Assembly: GCA_020891255.1 (NCBI GenBank)
Contig: BQFW01000002.1
Coordinates: 806,001 to 870,000, forward strand
Reading direction: 5' to 3'
Length of the DNA: 64,000 nucleotides
Origin: Entomortierella parvispora E1425
Lineage: Eukaryota > Fungi > Mortierellomycota
Below are positions 23,966-30,776 of the stretch, one piece after another. The position numbers and the translations under genes were made by a program. Every line of letters starts with the position of its first letter. The stretch's first letter is position 1. A model generated the notes under the pieces. That model did no database searches and was not told the DNA's origin. It was given only the letters and a program-made list of their open reading frames with translations.

Positions 23966-26179
23966 TTATCGGCGATGCAAAGTATGCTGCGTCGTCATGC
24001 CACGCTGGTTCTGTTGCAGTTGCTGCGTTGCAGGTCTTGGGGTGGTAACGGCCGAAGGACCGTTTTGAGTTGAGAGTGACGATAATGACGGCGGGGGCAT
24101 CCTCGTGTTCCAGGCGGATGTCATGGTAGGGTATGTTCCTGAGTAGTGGGGCAACTGATATTGTTGTGGCGATTGTTGTGGATGTTGGAGAGGGTACACC
24201 CCAAGCGCGGCCGGGGAGGTATTGCTGTGTCCACTTTCCCCTGCTGCTGCTGCTGCTGCTCCTGCGGATGTGGGTGATACTGTCCCCGAAGGCAATCCAG
24301 CGTTATCTCCCCGCGTCATCCTGGTAAATCTCGATAAACCATGAATGGAGGACGAGGAGATTGTAGATCCTCCTGTGGCAGTGGTCGGCGACGTGGACGT
24401 TATTGTTGTAGCACTCCTCGAGTCAGTACTGGGGCGTATACTTAACAAGTCGACTCGCGCATCTGTCTCGCTTTGATGTCGAAGGTTCGACGGACTGGCG
24501 GCGCTGCTGTGCAAAACACTGTAATCGCTGTCTCGATTCATTCCCCCCCTCTCCAGACCAAGCTGCTGCCAAGAAGGCTCTTCAGAGTCCCGAAAGGGTC
24601 CCTGATTAGATTCATTGTGTCTCTCCTCATTCTGTTGTTGAGGATGCAGGTGCTGCTGTTGGTACCCGGGATCGTTCTCGTCAAAAGGCTCTTCTTTGTA
24701 ATAATACCCTTGCTGGCTGTCTGGGTAGTATTCATGACCGCCGGTACTATAATGAGGTGAATTCCTAGCATAGTCCCTTCTTTGATCTCCTCCAGTGCCT
24801 TCTCTTCCATCTAGGGAATGCAGGTCGTCAAAGTCGATTGCAACATCGTGCTCCATGGCTGAATATCGCTTACTGTCCGTATTGGTAGGATGGTGGTGGT
24901 GGTTATGTTGATGGTTCGTCATGAAAGGAAACCGTTTCTTCTTGATCTGATAGTCGTAAAAAGGACCTCCCGTGATTGGAAAGGGCATGGGGATCGCCAT
25001 TTCTGAAATCAGTTTGGATTGAAAGTCGTGTTGTTTGTGAACCAGCTCCATCTCCTTTTCAATCGAGGGTTCCTTCCACCGCAGTGCTGAAGCCATGAGA
25101 ATCATAATGGAGGCGATGGCAATGATGGCCATGTTCCTATTGATTTTTTTTTTTTTAAAAAAAAAGCGTAGAAGAACCTTTAGCTTTTGTTCGGATGGTT
25201 CTTTCTTCTTCTTCCTTGGCAAGGCAGTCCTGCTTTCGCTTCATTCTTCTTTTTACCAGTAGAACCCGAGAACATCTGCCGCACATCCAATGGCGGGGAT
25301 GCCAGGTTGGGTCTCTCGCAGAGCCGGGAGTGCAAACAAGGTTGTGATACCCAAGGTGAGGACATGTTCATCCGTCACACGATACTTCCGGATCACCTGG
25401 ATGGCAATGATGCCAATCGCAATGCTGAGCGCCCACATGATCATGACAATAAACAAGGAGAATCCAATGGTGGTCGGGGAGCGCCTCGTAAAGATCTCGA
25501 TCGAGATCTTGTACAGGTCATCGTTCGACAAATGGACCGTCGGAATAAACTCGACCGATTGTAACATGCCCAAAAATGTTAAACTGACGGGAATCTTGTG
25601 CAACTGCTCCTTGTCCTTGTTGGCCAGAATCTCAAAGTAGCTCTTGTACGCGTCAAAGGGATAGTCGATCGTGGCTCCCTGCATGTACGGCATCGTCACG
25701 TCCACAGAACGCCTATTCCTCGCCCTCGACAGTGTTAGATGCGAGAAAGAAAAAGAAAAAAAAACACGCACTGCGCTTTGTCGCACGAGCCAATCACCCC
25801 TCCAGTAGATATAAACTTACATGATCTGTGCATCCGGGAATGTCAAAGTCGTGTAGAACAAAGAGACTGAGATGGCTGAGGTGAGCACCCCATCATCGCC
25901 CGCCAAGGTGCCATGAGGCGTAAACTCGAAATGGACCCGAAAGTTCTTGTCTTCGAAATCCACACTGGCCACGGATCCCACCACATGGATATAATCGCCT
26001 GTATGGGACACACCCTGGGGCCCAACTTCGACGACGGACCGGACATTGTCGCCTTCTTTGCGATAGATGGAGAAGATGGGGATGACGATGGCGCAGAGGG
26101 ACCCGATCACAATCACACACCATAGCGTTCTTCGAGCCCAGGTCCGGAGTTCGCCTGTCTGGGCATGGAACAGGGCCAT
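23966..26179 (-). CDS. DUF4436-like membrane protein with pentameric ligand-gated ion channel-like motifs (3 exons)
   Basis: Exons 26179-25821, 25712-25257 and 25136-23966 splice in phase. Product has an N-terminal hydrophobic helix, a beta-rich region with YPFD, three further hydrophobic helices (IGFSLFIVMIMWALSIAIGIIAI; VLTLGITTLFALPAL; VLGFYWNMAIIAIASIMILMA) and a long disordered tail. The DUF4436 label is recalled from the YPFD and LFALPALR..QPGIPAIG..D pattern. Confidence 0.8.
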
Positions 26180-27307: not shown

Positions 27308-30300
27308 TTAAACAGCACGAACCACAACACTCTCGTTGGCAAGGAAGCTGTGGTCCAACAAAAAGATATCCAAATCTTGCCATCCACCGCCGACGCGGAC
27401 CATGACTTTGCTCTGACGCTTCTTGGACGACGTCTCGGCCTCGGCCTTTTGCAAAGCAGCCAGACTACCGCTCGAGTAGATCGTGGCCAAAGGGCCCCCG
27501 TTGCGCTTGGGGTCCATCTGGGCCGAGGAGGCCGAGGACAGGGACGAAGGGGGCCTGTTGTTGGGCTGGGGTGGGTTCTGCAAACCATCGTCCGTGCTCC
27601 CACTGTGGGAGCCTCCACTCGACACACCCGAGTCGTCTCCAGTGCCGGACTGGCTACCAGCGGTCGAGGAGACGATGCGACCGTACTCCATCAAGCGACA
27701 GAGGACGACCTTGCCGCCCGTCATGGTTAAACTCCCACCGGGCTGTTCGACCATCCGACCTCCAAAGTAGTACTTGCCCTCGCCCAACCGCTGTACCTTC
27801 ATCTGGATGGGACTCGCGTTCACAACGCGCGCAAATTGCTCATCGAGCTCGTCATTCATCGCGGGCCTGTAGGGCTCGATCTCTTCAATCTGGATCTTTT
27901 CCATCATCTCGGGGAGCTGTCGGCTCTTGGAGGGAGGAGGTGAAGTCACCATGGGCTGCCGGTTGGTGGGCACGGGGGACTGATACCGAGAATGAGATTG
28001 CTGCTGTTGTTGTCTTTGCTGCTGCAGGTATTGCTCTCGCTGAAGATCGCGCTGACGCGCCAAGGACCCGATCGAGGACGTGGACGTCGTGGGGCTACCG
28101 GGTTCATCATATCCTCCATAGTGGTATGAATCGCGGCTCAGACTCGAAGTGGACCCAGAGGCTGAGCCTGGACGCGAGCCGTACAATGTGGACGAAGGAC
28201 GCGAATGTTGTTGTCCACGATCGTCAAAGTAACCACTGTGATGGCCTTGCCGGGGCGTCGTATGGGCCGAGGAGGCAGGAGAACCTCGACCATGGGAGTC
28301 GTAGTGGTTCTGCTGTTGGCCATAGCCCGAAGAGCTCACGGAGCCATTGGCACTAAATTGCCTTTGTCGACCAGAGAGAGCCGAGGTGGGCAGACGCGAG
28401 TTGGGCGTAGTGGGGGAGGCCGCGTAGTTTCTTGGGATCGGGGACCCAGCTTCTCGACTGGCGTTGGGAGTGTTTCCTCTTGACCCAGGTCGTTGCAGCT
28501 GAGGTGAGGGACTCAAGCCTGAGCTGCCCCGCTGGGTGGACGAGGACCGGGACGAAGGCGTGGGCAGTTGCGACTGGCGACGGGAGGCCGTCGTGCCTGG
28601 AGTAGATTCGCCACCGCGAATACCAGTCGAGAGCTTGCTGTTGCTTCCAGCAGGAGAGAATACTGGCTTGTATTGGGCGGGTGACTTTAGCCCTGAAGGC
28701 GTGCTGCCTCTGTAGCCTGCTGGCTCGTCTTGGTATTGGCCCATGATGGAAGTAGGGCGAGGGATATAGGTAGCAGCGGCAGAGAGGACCTGGGGGATCC
28801 CTGGGATGCCAGGAGACGAGACCGACACTGACGGGCACCTATTGACATGAAAAGAAAGGATGGTTTATTAATCAAGGTCAACAGCAGGACAAAGAAGAAT
28901 TACTGTGCGCGACAGTGCAGGATGCTTACCAAGGACGAGAGCGTCGAGAAGGGGAGCGTTCGGGACTGGGGCTGAGAGAGCGATAGTTGTTGAGGGCACT
29001 GGCCGTCAACATGGGCGAGCGAGAGACGCTGCCGTTGGACGTGGCAGGAGACCAAGGACGGTATTGCGACTGCGAGTGACCATTCAAGGGCGAGCGTGTT
29101 CTTGACCGACCAGGAGAGGGGGAGGGCGAGCGGAGCGAAGTCGAAGGAGGTCTTCGTCCACGTTGCATTTGCTGCTGTTGTTGTTGCTGCTGCTGCTTCT
29201 GACGGCTTTGAATAGGCGTCAGAGGCGCGATGGCCGTGGATGACCTCCAGCCGGCGGGCGTGGGCTTTGCGGGGGTCTTCTTGGCAGGGGCCTCTTGCTT
29301 CTTGAGCGGGAGCTTTGGCAAGTATGGGGTTCTCGAGTCATCCAAGATGTCCAGCATGCGCTCGACGCCATCGAGTTCCATGTCTACGCGTTCAAGTCCG
29401 TCCTGAAGCTGGTCCCACTTCAAGTTCATGGCTTGATGCCTCGAGACCACGTCCATGTTGCGGGTCATCCGGCTCTCGATGCCACTCTCGAGCATATCCA
29501 ACATCTTGTTGACAGCAGGAGAATAATACTTTTGTTTGGCCTCGAATGATTGAAAGATGCTGTAGAGATGATCTCGATCGATGGGTGCATCAGGAACAAC
29601 CTTTTGGCGGACCATGCCCTTGATCTGATCCAGGAGACCCTGGCAATGAACAATGGCCCGTTCCATCGACTCCATCATGGACTCGACCTGCTCTGCTACC
29701 TGCTCAAAGACCTCCAGCCACTTGTCCTCCTTGAGCTCCTCACTAACGCGCTCCCGACGGAACTTGAGGTCGTCCCAAAGGGAGAGGACCTGTTGGTATC
29801 GACTTTGCAATTGATCTTTGGATTCATTGCCAAGGGTGGAATCGTCCGAAGTTGGCAAAGAGCCCACCCGGTTATCCAAAAAGTCGATCCGAGAGATCAA
29901 CAGTTCAATGCGAGAATCCACTTGAGCCAGCGTGTCCAAGCTCCGTTGCTTGGCCTCGGCCTCGACTTGACTACCGGGCTTGTGATGGCCACTAGGCAAG
30001 AGGCCCTCCTCGTCCGAAGTCATGGCACTTCGCTCATTGTTGTAATTGTCGATGCTGGTGCAGATATCTTGAATGTCTTGCAAGACATTGTCCATGTGTG
30101 TCAAGAGCTCGCCTCGGAGACGTGCCCCTGCAAGATCGCCCTTGACCTTTTCCAACATTTGCTTGAGGGACGACCAACTGGACATGATGCTCTGCGTCGT
30201 CTGTTGAAGATCGTGTTCTACCTCCGAGGAGGCTGGATCAGGGGTGCCTGGAGAGGCAGCAGCATCCGTCTTGATCCGGGACTCGATGCGCTCCTTCAAC

Positions 30301-30776
30301 TCTACCAACATGTCGACGTTGGGCTGGAACCGGTTCATGATCACATCGATCGCTCCCACATCCCTCTTATCCGTCGCGCCTTCTTGGCCCACATCCATCG
30401 ACAGCGCAAACACGGCCATTTCCGCAGTTTCGAGCCATGTCCTCAAGTCCGAGGCTGCGCCTCTGAACCGTTCGTGCAATGTTTGAAGTGGGATGGTCTC
30501 GTGTGAGGAAAGGGCGTGGTAGATATCGCTGTAAGGGACGGGTAACCGCTTGAGGTTCTCGAGTTGGGAATGGTATGATTCATAGAGGCCTGTGGTTGCT
30601 GGAGTAGAGTTGGGCGGTGATACCGTTGTCGTCGTTGGTTTTGATGGCTCGGCAGATGCGATGACGGTGGCCATTGATGTTGATGCAGAGATGGAAGGAG
30701 AAGGCGTTGGTGTTGTAGAGGGTTCTTGGAAGAGTAGAGAGGACGAGATTGGTGGTGATGATACAAGGGTAGCCAT
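27308..30776 (-). CDS. KAR9-like helical protein fused to a C-terminal GAR (GAS2) microtubule-binding domain, 2 exons
   Basis: N-terminal helical region (DKWLEVFEQVAEQVESMMESMERAI; FEAKQKYYSPAV) resembles fungal KAR9-family proteins. The intron (donor gtaagc near 28928, acceptor near 28838) keeps frame. GAR motif: ELDEQFARVV..KVQRLGEGKYYFGG..KVVLCRLM...VMVRVGGGWQDLDIFLLDH. GAR is confident; the KAR9 label is less so. Confidence 0.8.

Follow-up and report, generated by a model that had tools for sequence, protein, structure and literature searches.

The window analysed here is the whole 64,000 nt stretch at positions 806,001 to 870,000 (forward strand) of contig BQFW01000002.1 from the mortierellomycete fungus Entomortierella parvispora E1425 (assembly GCA_020891255.1). 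[quoted passage not shown] The pLGIC transmembrane helices are called M1 to M4, and the N-terminal transmembrane helix of the DUF4436 protein is called TM0. The parts of the gene, numbered within the window, are as follows.

26179..23966, minus strand: gene, three exons, join 26179..25821, 25712..25257, 25136..23966
25821..26179, minus strand: exon 1, ATG at 26179; residues 1–119 and two bases of codon 120
25713..25820, minus strand: intron 1, 108 nt, GTAAGT...AG
25257..25712, minus strand: exon 2, residues 120–272, with the Pro-loop, M1, M2 candidate, M2–M3 loop and start of M3; Pfam DUF4436 match
25137..25256, minus strand: intron 2, 120 nt, GTAAAA...AG; interrupts the codon of W272 within M3
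23966..25136, minus strand: exon 3, remainder of M3, putative cytoplasmic tail and stop codon (23968..23966)

After splicing, the open frame runs for 661 codons plus a stop. Both introns are of the GT..AG type, and the exon junction is continuous and ungapped in alignment with intron-free bacterial homologues. This gene model is also the deposited one, the spliced product being identical at 661/661 residues to database protein P0152, ‘hypothetical protein EMPS_01129 [Entomortierella parvispora]’. Exon 2 alone matches DUF4436 in Pfam (E 3.4e-20), and residues 1–300 reach 104 bits, the cut-off being 23.2, over profile positions 18–251 of 255. The protein is a clear DUF4436 member, above the Pfam gathering threshold over most of the model. 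A T9/A13 homopolymer tract is present within intron 2 (25137–25256).

A first-pass annotation, made from the DNA letters alone, had listed an ordered series of pLGIC-like motifs in this protein, and all of them are found in the spliced product in that order and at those positions. Apart from YPFD and the hydrophobic helices, they comprise HVVGSVASVDFEDKNFRVHFEF (residues 65–86), the basic stretch IEIFTRRSP (residues 191–199), EHVLTLGITTLFALPAL (residues 235–251) and RETQPGIPAIGCAADVLG (residues 252–269). Kyte-Doolittle hydropathy gives strong hydrophobic segments at residues ~17–41, ~199–229 and ~266–293, and a moderate one at 235–251. Structural features were read from an AlphaFold2 (AF2) prediction, model 1, of residues 1–305 of the orthologue P0001 with 44 homologues (predicted local distance difference test, pLDDT, 90.2; predicted template modelling score, pTM, 0.80). 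P0001 is 94 % identical to the E. parvispora protein over residues 1–305 and 97 % over exon 2, with no indels in residues 1–300. Conservation counts, here and below, refer to a non-redundant alignment of 99 DUF4436 homologues.

26057..26131, minus strand: TM0, N-terminal transmembrane helix by hydropathy, residues ~17–41, preceded by R12, R16 and R17
25913..25993, minus strand: beta1–beta2 hairpin, residues 63–89; model strands 63–74 and 79–89
25958..25960, minus strand: Asp74, at the loop-2 position; D in 86/99 homologues
25652..25663, minus strand: Pro-loop YPFD, residues 137–140, in the beta6–beta7 loop between strands 123–128 and 141–152
25481..25483, minus strand: R197, the pre-M1 arginine, where the last beta strand ends; R in 96/99
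25388..25477, minus strand: M1, residues 199–228, model helix 199–228; W213 in 98/99
25313..25369, minus strand: M2 candidate, residues 235–253, model helix 235–253
25283..25312, minus strand: M2–M3 loop, residues 254–263, with Q255, P256, G257, P259 and G262
25076..25282, minus strand: M3, residues 264–292, coded by 25282..25257 and 25136..25076; the range spans intron 2
23969..25075, minus strand: putative cytoplasmic C-terminal tail, residues 293–661, low-complexity, at the position of the pLGIC M3–M4 loop

In model 1 these features form a helix (3–45), ten beta strands (49–197) and three further helices (199–228, 235–253 and 264–290, the last being M3). TM0 is modelled with a pLDDT of 88–92 and is present in bacterial members as well. 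It probably serves as a signal anchor that is not cleaved and leads from the cytoplasm to the outside, and stands where animal pLGIC precursors have a signal peptide; in a Foldseek search of the Swiss-Prot part of the AlphaFold Database (AFDB), TM0 was aligned with the N-terminal signal-peptide region of several pLGIC precursors. Basic residues occur before TM0 (R12, R16, R17), in the M1–M2 link (KYR) and after M3. This fits a topology with the N-terminus inside, the sandwich outside, M1 passing out-to-in, M2 in-to-out and M3 out-to-in, and the tail inside. Apart from the signal-anchor helix, such a topology is that of pLGICs. No cysteine is present in residues 42–198, and YPFD thus lacks flanking cysteines. 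The tail comprises 369 residues rich in S, T, P, Q, G and H, and its highest 19-residue Kyte-Doolittle mean is 0.79; composition and hydropathy therefore bear out the first-pass description of a long disordered tail without a fourth hydrophobic helix. Its length varies, with orthologues ranging from 381 to 661 amino acids.

The predicted fold links the protein to pLGICs. Searched against the Protein Data Bank (PDB) with Foldseek, model 1 returned at least 500 matches at E<=1e-3, of which the top 50 are all pLGICs (best E 3.9e-9, probability 1.00), including alpha7 and alpha4beta2 nicotinic, glycine, GABA-A, GluCl and 5-HT3A subunits. A Foldseek-independent search of 48,161 representative chains put pLGICs at the head of the list, with Z scores of 9.6 for ZAC, 9.6 for GABA-A, 9.3 for GluCl, 8.8 for GLIC, 8.6 for sTeLIC and 8.1 for DeCLIC. 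Only pLGICs span both domains in that search, with 205–224 residues aligned from beta1 to M3, and VIA alignments to pLGIC chains start at model residue 58–61. Likewise, each of the top 30 matches in AFDB Swiss-Prot is a reviewed pLGIC subunit, and characterised proteins of fungi are absent from these matches.

Two further libraries of predicted structures point to the same family. In the ESM Atlas, bacterial DUF4436 proteins superpose over residues 1–295 with template modelling scores (TM-scores) of 0.85/0.88, and clusters of Neur_chan_LBD/memb, the Pfam families of the pLGIC ligand-binding and membrane domains, come next by shape (TM ~0.5 over residues 62–293). Rank 1 among AFDB clusters is a 264 amino acid protein automatically named ‘Neurotransmitter-gated ion-channel ligand-binding domain-containing protein’ (28 % identity, TM 0.74/0.85), followed by DUF4436 proteins and then by animal receptors. 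Across the four structure libraries, the non-DUF4436 matches that cover both domains are pLGIC subunits. A beta-sandwich with pLGIC strand order is predicted, and in the models the fold from beta1 to M3 is common to DUF4436 and pLGIC subunits.

A second prediction, model 2, was made for the Streptomyces DUF4436 protein P0245 from a separate bacterial alignment (pLDDT 88.8, pTM 0.79). It has the same order of secondary structure elements, and its top 50 Foldseek matches are again all pLGICs (best E 1.6e-8). Because this replicate agrees, the pLGIC fold holds family-wide, beyond one model, and the fold proposed in the first-pass annotation is upheld by a strong structural match reproduced with two independent AF2 models and Foldseek. 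It could still be argued that the similarity is convergence or a modelling artefact, in which a generic beta-sandwich and helices carry YPFD by chance; TM-scores below 0.5 and a best sequence-search E of 0.013 would be in keeping with this. However, the two models come from non-overlapping alignments and agree, ESMFold-based Atlas models of bacterial members superpose with a TM-score of 0.85, the matches are collinear through both domains over 205–224 residues, and four libraries return the same family. In addition, YPFD falls in the equivalent loop, and the pre-M1 Arg and loop-2 Asp are conserved too. Chance similarity is accordingly considered very improbable.

Two sets of structure matches lie outside this comparison. 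Unnamed bacterial clusters without a Pfam family (Acidobacteriota, Pseudomonadota) were found in the ESM Atlas with TM 0.47–0.69 to the model, and could represent additional pLGIC-like families, as yet unannotated, intermediate between the canonical channels and DUF4436. Among AFDB clusters, proteins automatically named GPCR family 3, Transporter, DUF2207, MMPL and ‘TRP C-terminal domain’ matched at TM 0.53–0.65 (by query) through the sandwich-plus-helices module, which suggests that this module occurs inside larger membrane proteins.

The sequence-level signal is weak and points to the same superfamily. After removal of the N-terminal helix, the 99-sequence family profile has its best PDB match in the octopus chemotactile receptor CRT1, a pLGIC (E 0.013). 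The alignment is in register, with YPFD on YPFD and R197 on the pre-M1 Arg, and continues into M1. As a lead only, language-model features of exon 2 rank DUF4436 clusters first, then Neur_chan_LBD/Neur_chan_memb clusters (score 0.70). The full-length profile gave connexin-43 as its top PDB match (E 0.009), on the TM0 region; this was rejected as hydrophobic-helix noise because it is gone once TM0 is trimmed. A profile of the M2–M3 region had no PDB match at E<=10.

Several observations weigh against assigning DUF4436 to the pLGICs. Both DUF4436 structures are predictions. TM-scores to solved pLGICs are modest (0.30–0.44; root-mean-square deviation 5–6 A over ~210 residues). Generic three-helix bundles reach similar Z scores (8–9.3), on ~80 membrane-helix residues only. 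The CRT1 match is marginal and confined to two related receptors, and phmmer searches with exons 1 and 2 found no pLGIC in the PDB, only noise (PsaK, geopilin). The Pfam profile match to Neur_chan_LBD (PF02931) or Neur_chan_memb (PF02932) that the first-pass annotation had looked to was not obtained at E<=10 for the E. parvispora protein or for five other members, DUF4436 being the only significant family; nor do the Neur_chan families appear among the best 25 of 69 Pfam matches for 44 aligned members. Hydropathy and the model give no M4 after M3, there being no hydrophobic segment in the tail. Finally, the M2 candidate is short (19 residues), contains a conserved proline (P249) and has a variable cytoplasmic half.

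Family-wide conservation is concentrated in the features that DUF4436 would share with pLGICs. Residues kept in at least 84 % of homologues are D74, G132, Y137, P138, F139, D140, R197, F204, W213, L245, F246, A247, P249, R252, P256, G257, P259, G262, D266, F270 and W272, with Q255 slightly below (83/99). At YPFD the counts are Y 89 and F 10, P 98, F 84, and D 84 and E 14 of 99; tested as the Pro-loop motif Y/F-P-x-D, Y/F occurs in 99/99, P in 98/99 and D/E in 98/99. The outer half of the M2 candidate, LFALPALR, is nearly invariant (F246 98/99, P249 93/99, R252 99/99), and conservation continues through the M2–M3 loop (P256 98/99, P259 97/99, G262 99/99) into M3 (D266 99/99, W272 88/99). YPFD, the pre-M1 Arg and the block LFALPALRxxQPGxPxxGxxxD are thus conserved beyond chance level among the homologues. 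Across the family, conservation is lacking in the upper sensor domain.

The Y/FPxD motif is the best marker of the pLGIC superfamily, in which conserved residues cluster at the interface of the extracellular and transmembrane domains (Jaiteh et al., PMC4795631). In GLIC, D32 of loop 2 and D122 of loop 7 are salt-bridged to R192 before M1, and this triad takes part in signal transduction (PMC5760087). D74 (86/99), D140 (84 D and 14 E) and R197 (96/99) appear to occupy the sequence positions that correspond to GLIC D32, D122 and R192, those of the pLGIC interface triad. The residues kept family-wide lie in or next to the pLGIC coupling loops, namely the loop-2 Asp, YPFD, the pre-M1 Arg and the M2–M3 loop.

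The first-pass annotation had expected both YPFD and LGITT to be conserved across homologues. YPFD is kept (Pro 98/99), but LGITT (residues 240–244), like the rest of the cytoplasmic half of the M2 candidate, is variable: L 16, G 31, I 21, T 29 and T 8 of 99, the last at T244. The likeness of LGITT to glycine-receptor M2 is limited to close relatives of the E. parvispora protein and is no family feature. The proposed likeness of M2 to that of GlyR/GABA-A has no statistical support, because the M2–M3 profile is without a PDB match, and LGITT is variable; the anion selectivity drawn from this likeness was rejected. The register of M2 against canonical numbering is ambiguous. Its inner end is acidic, position 234 being E in half of the family and D in E. 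parvispora, which also has E235. Read from sequence, these acids are compatible with cation as well as anion selectivity, and selectivity is not readable.

In comparison with the prokaryotic channels GLIC, ELIC, sTeLIC and DeCLIC, DUF4436 has in common a Cys-less Pro-loop of the form Y/FPxD, a compact sensor domain directly before M1–M3, and, by sequence position, the conserved loop-2 Asp, loop-7 Asp and pre-M1 Arg; bacterial DUF4436 proteins, like these channels, are without a long M3–M4 loop. Unlike them, DUF4436 has no M4, an extra N-terminal transmembrane helix instead of a cleaved signal peptide, a shorter M2 candidate with a conserved Pro, and no Pfam Neur_chan match. Its sensor domain comprises ~150 residues, whereas those of pLGICs comprise ~200. 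With the animal Cys-loop receptors (GABA-A, glycine, nicotinic, 5-HT3, ZAC and GluCl), DUF4436 has the order of strands and M1–M3 in common, and fungal members additionally carry, at the position of the M3–M4 intracellular domain, a long, disordered and variable cytoplasmic segment after M3, as the animal receptors do. Differences from the animal receptors are the lack of the Cys-loop disulfide and of a fourth helix closing the intracellular segment, and an identity of 10–16 %. Animal receptors also carry an N-terminal alpha-helix atop the sensor domain, which the DUF4436 model lacks. Within the family, the E. parvispora protein shares its layout of TM0, sandwich and three helices with Pfam DUF4436; Mortierellaceae proteins add a disordered C-terminal tail of 100–370 residues, whereas bacterial members have none.

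Taken with the points against it, the evidence makes it likely that the gene product, and with it the whole of DUF4436, is a divergent and member-like variant of the pLGIC superfamily. The protein would work as pLGICs do and is very probably of pLGIC descent. It is regarded as a variant and not as a standard pLGIC because neither the four-helix arrangement nor a Pfam Neur_chan match was found, and may best be described as an M4-less branch of the pLGIC fold with an added N-terminal helix. The layout of the protein would then be a cytoplasmic N-terminus, TM0, an extracellular Cys-less beta-sandwich of ~150 residues, M1–M3 and a long disordered cytoplasmic tail. The assembled form would be ring-shaped and most probably pentameric, M2 being turned towards a pore at its centre. 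At the periphery, TM0 may lie against M1 and M3 where M4 would otherwise be; this position is reasonable because TM0 has an M4-like direction, is equally poorly conserved, and is placed in the same way by AF2 and ESMFold-based models. Mean-field direct coupling analysis of 254 sequences (Neff 134) for TM0 contacts gave physically implausible top pairs with unsound residue mapping, and was discarded. Through the conserved interface, events in the extracellular domain would be relayed to the pore and cause it to open or close; if the coupling machinery is retained, as its conservation suggests, a signal would be transmitted from the sensor domain to the helices.

Fold and descent could also have been kept in a protein that is no ion channel, serving instead as a membrane receptor, sensor or scaffold, with the interface used for folding or for signalling to the tail and not for pore gating. 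The short M2 candidate with its nearly invariant Pro and variable inner half would suit such a role, as would the absence of M4 and the fact that the upper part of the sensor domain has no aromatic ligand box that is conserved, and the long, variable, disordered tail of the fungal proteins could be a signalling or trafficking platform. However, conservation is strongest at the residues through which, in pLGICs, ligand binding is coupled to the pore. The M2 candidate also has a stripe of small residues and F246 (positions 239, 243, 246/247 and 250) whose periodicity is that of a face that lines a pore or is tightly packed, and the bacterial members are tail-less, so that the core module must function alone. 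On balance a non-channel role is judged rather unlikely, and the pLGIC-variant assignment is preferred.

Homologues are widespread. When exon 2 was used as the query of an exhaustive phmmer search, 740 representative proteins or clusters were obtained at E<=1e-3. Fungal relatives occur in Mortierellomycota (82–97 % identity) and Mucoromycota (34–45 %; Umbelopsis, Rhizopus, Cunninghamella, Phycomyces), as well as in Calcarisporiella, the chytrid Blyttiomyces and Neoconidiobolus. Bacterial relatives are many in Actinomycetota (Streptomyces, Kitasatospora, Actinomadura, Microbacterium, Mycobacterium) and are also present in Verrucomicrobiota, Pseudanabaena-type cyanobacteria, Acidobacteriota, Ignavibacteria and Chloroflexota. 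A single archaeal relative comes from a Thermoplasmatota metagenome-assembled genome.

A quick, unrooted maximum-likelihood tree was made from 15 named fungal and 19 named prokaryotic sequences, hand-chosen, with unnamed sequences and Dikarya left out. All fungi fall on one side of a branch (Shimodaira–Hasegawa-like approximate likelihood ratio test, SH-aLRT, 96), and their internal order follows taxonomy. Thus the DUF4436 gene is an old resident of early-diverging fungi and no recent transfer or contamination. Residence had already been argued in the first-pass annotation from the introns, which are present, and the tree adds that fungi of four phyla stand apart from the prokaryotes.

Some Mortierellaceae genomes carry two close paralogues of the DUF4436 gene, as in Mortierella sp. 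GBA43 (P0005 and P0157, 89–90 % identity to P0001) and in pairs of the P0154/P0179 type. Six Mucorales gene models of ~680–730 amino acids (P0011, P0019, P0194, P0195, P0196 and P0204) combine an F-box (PF12937, PF00646, PF19270) with a C-terminal DUF4436, and could be either genuine fusions or adjacent genes that were merged. The name ‘F-box only protein 9’ is given to one fragment from Umbelopsis.

Upstream of the DUF4436 gene, two long open reading frames at 27308–30776 of the window (minus strand) match KAR9 and GAS2 domains, and are probably one spliced cytoskeleton-linker gene. These gene neighbours within the window give no functional hint and are unrelated to the DUF4436 finding. Bacterial neighbourhoods offer a ligand lead. 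In six actinobacterial genera (Streptomyces, Actinomadura, Paeniglutamicibacter, Agromyces, Microbacterium and Kitasatospora) the DUF4436 gene lies 0.1–3 kb from a gene of the agmatine-deiminase family, PAD_porph, and in 5/6 of these a TetR-family regulator gene is present within the fetched locus. The loci are as follows.

L001:3969-6882, L005:4935-6837, L007:3132-5864, L064-L069, L075, L082, L088: DUF4436/PAD_porph loci

In Kibdelosporangium (L008), CN_hydrolase and TetR genes are nearby instead of PAD_porph. The link is absent at the loci of Mycobacterium, Verrucomicrobiota (neighbour: SIS-domain) and Pseudanabaena (neighbours: DUF3598/BFA1-like and AAA_33/APH). The PAD_porph association is therefore lineage-restricted and says nothing direct about the fungal protein; for the actinobacterial branch it suggests agmatine-pathway amines or guanidino compounds as the first ligand, or possibly substrate, candidates. 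A bolder proposal is that the DUF4436 proteins of fungi and bacteria are working homopentameric gated channels in which TM0 replaces M4 as a natural permutation, that the actinobacterial members respond to agmatine-pathway amines, and that fungi possess a pLGIC lineage of their own. This is put forward tentatively, as a possible outcome and not the expected one.

The first-pass annotation regarded pLGICs as absent from fungi, and the published survey of the superfamily indeed detected none in Fungi (PMC4795631). The literature searched holds no assignment of function or fold for DUF4436, which is mentioned only as a row in an expression table. Fungal or M4-less pLGICs are likewise not described in the searched literature; a description may exist outside what is indexed there. 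One structural relative already bears a pLGIC-type name assigned automatically by a database, so that the link between DUF4436 and pLGICs can be retrieved.

Should DUF4436 be a divergent branch of the pLGICs, their superfamily would extend to early-diverging fungi and to many bacterial phyla in which an unannotated DUF is its only representative. The four-helix membrane domain would then not be obligatory, as three helices and an N-terminal helix may suffice, and this would bear on the contribution of M4 to folding and gating. Bacterial members are practical for structure determination and electrophysiology because they are small and tail-less, and the nearby genes of the agmatine-deiminase family offer a definite set of ligands to begin with. 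A testable function would thereby be given to an uncharacterised family of which several hundred homologues are detectable.

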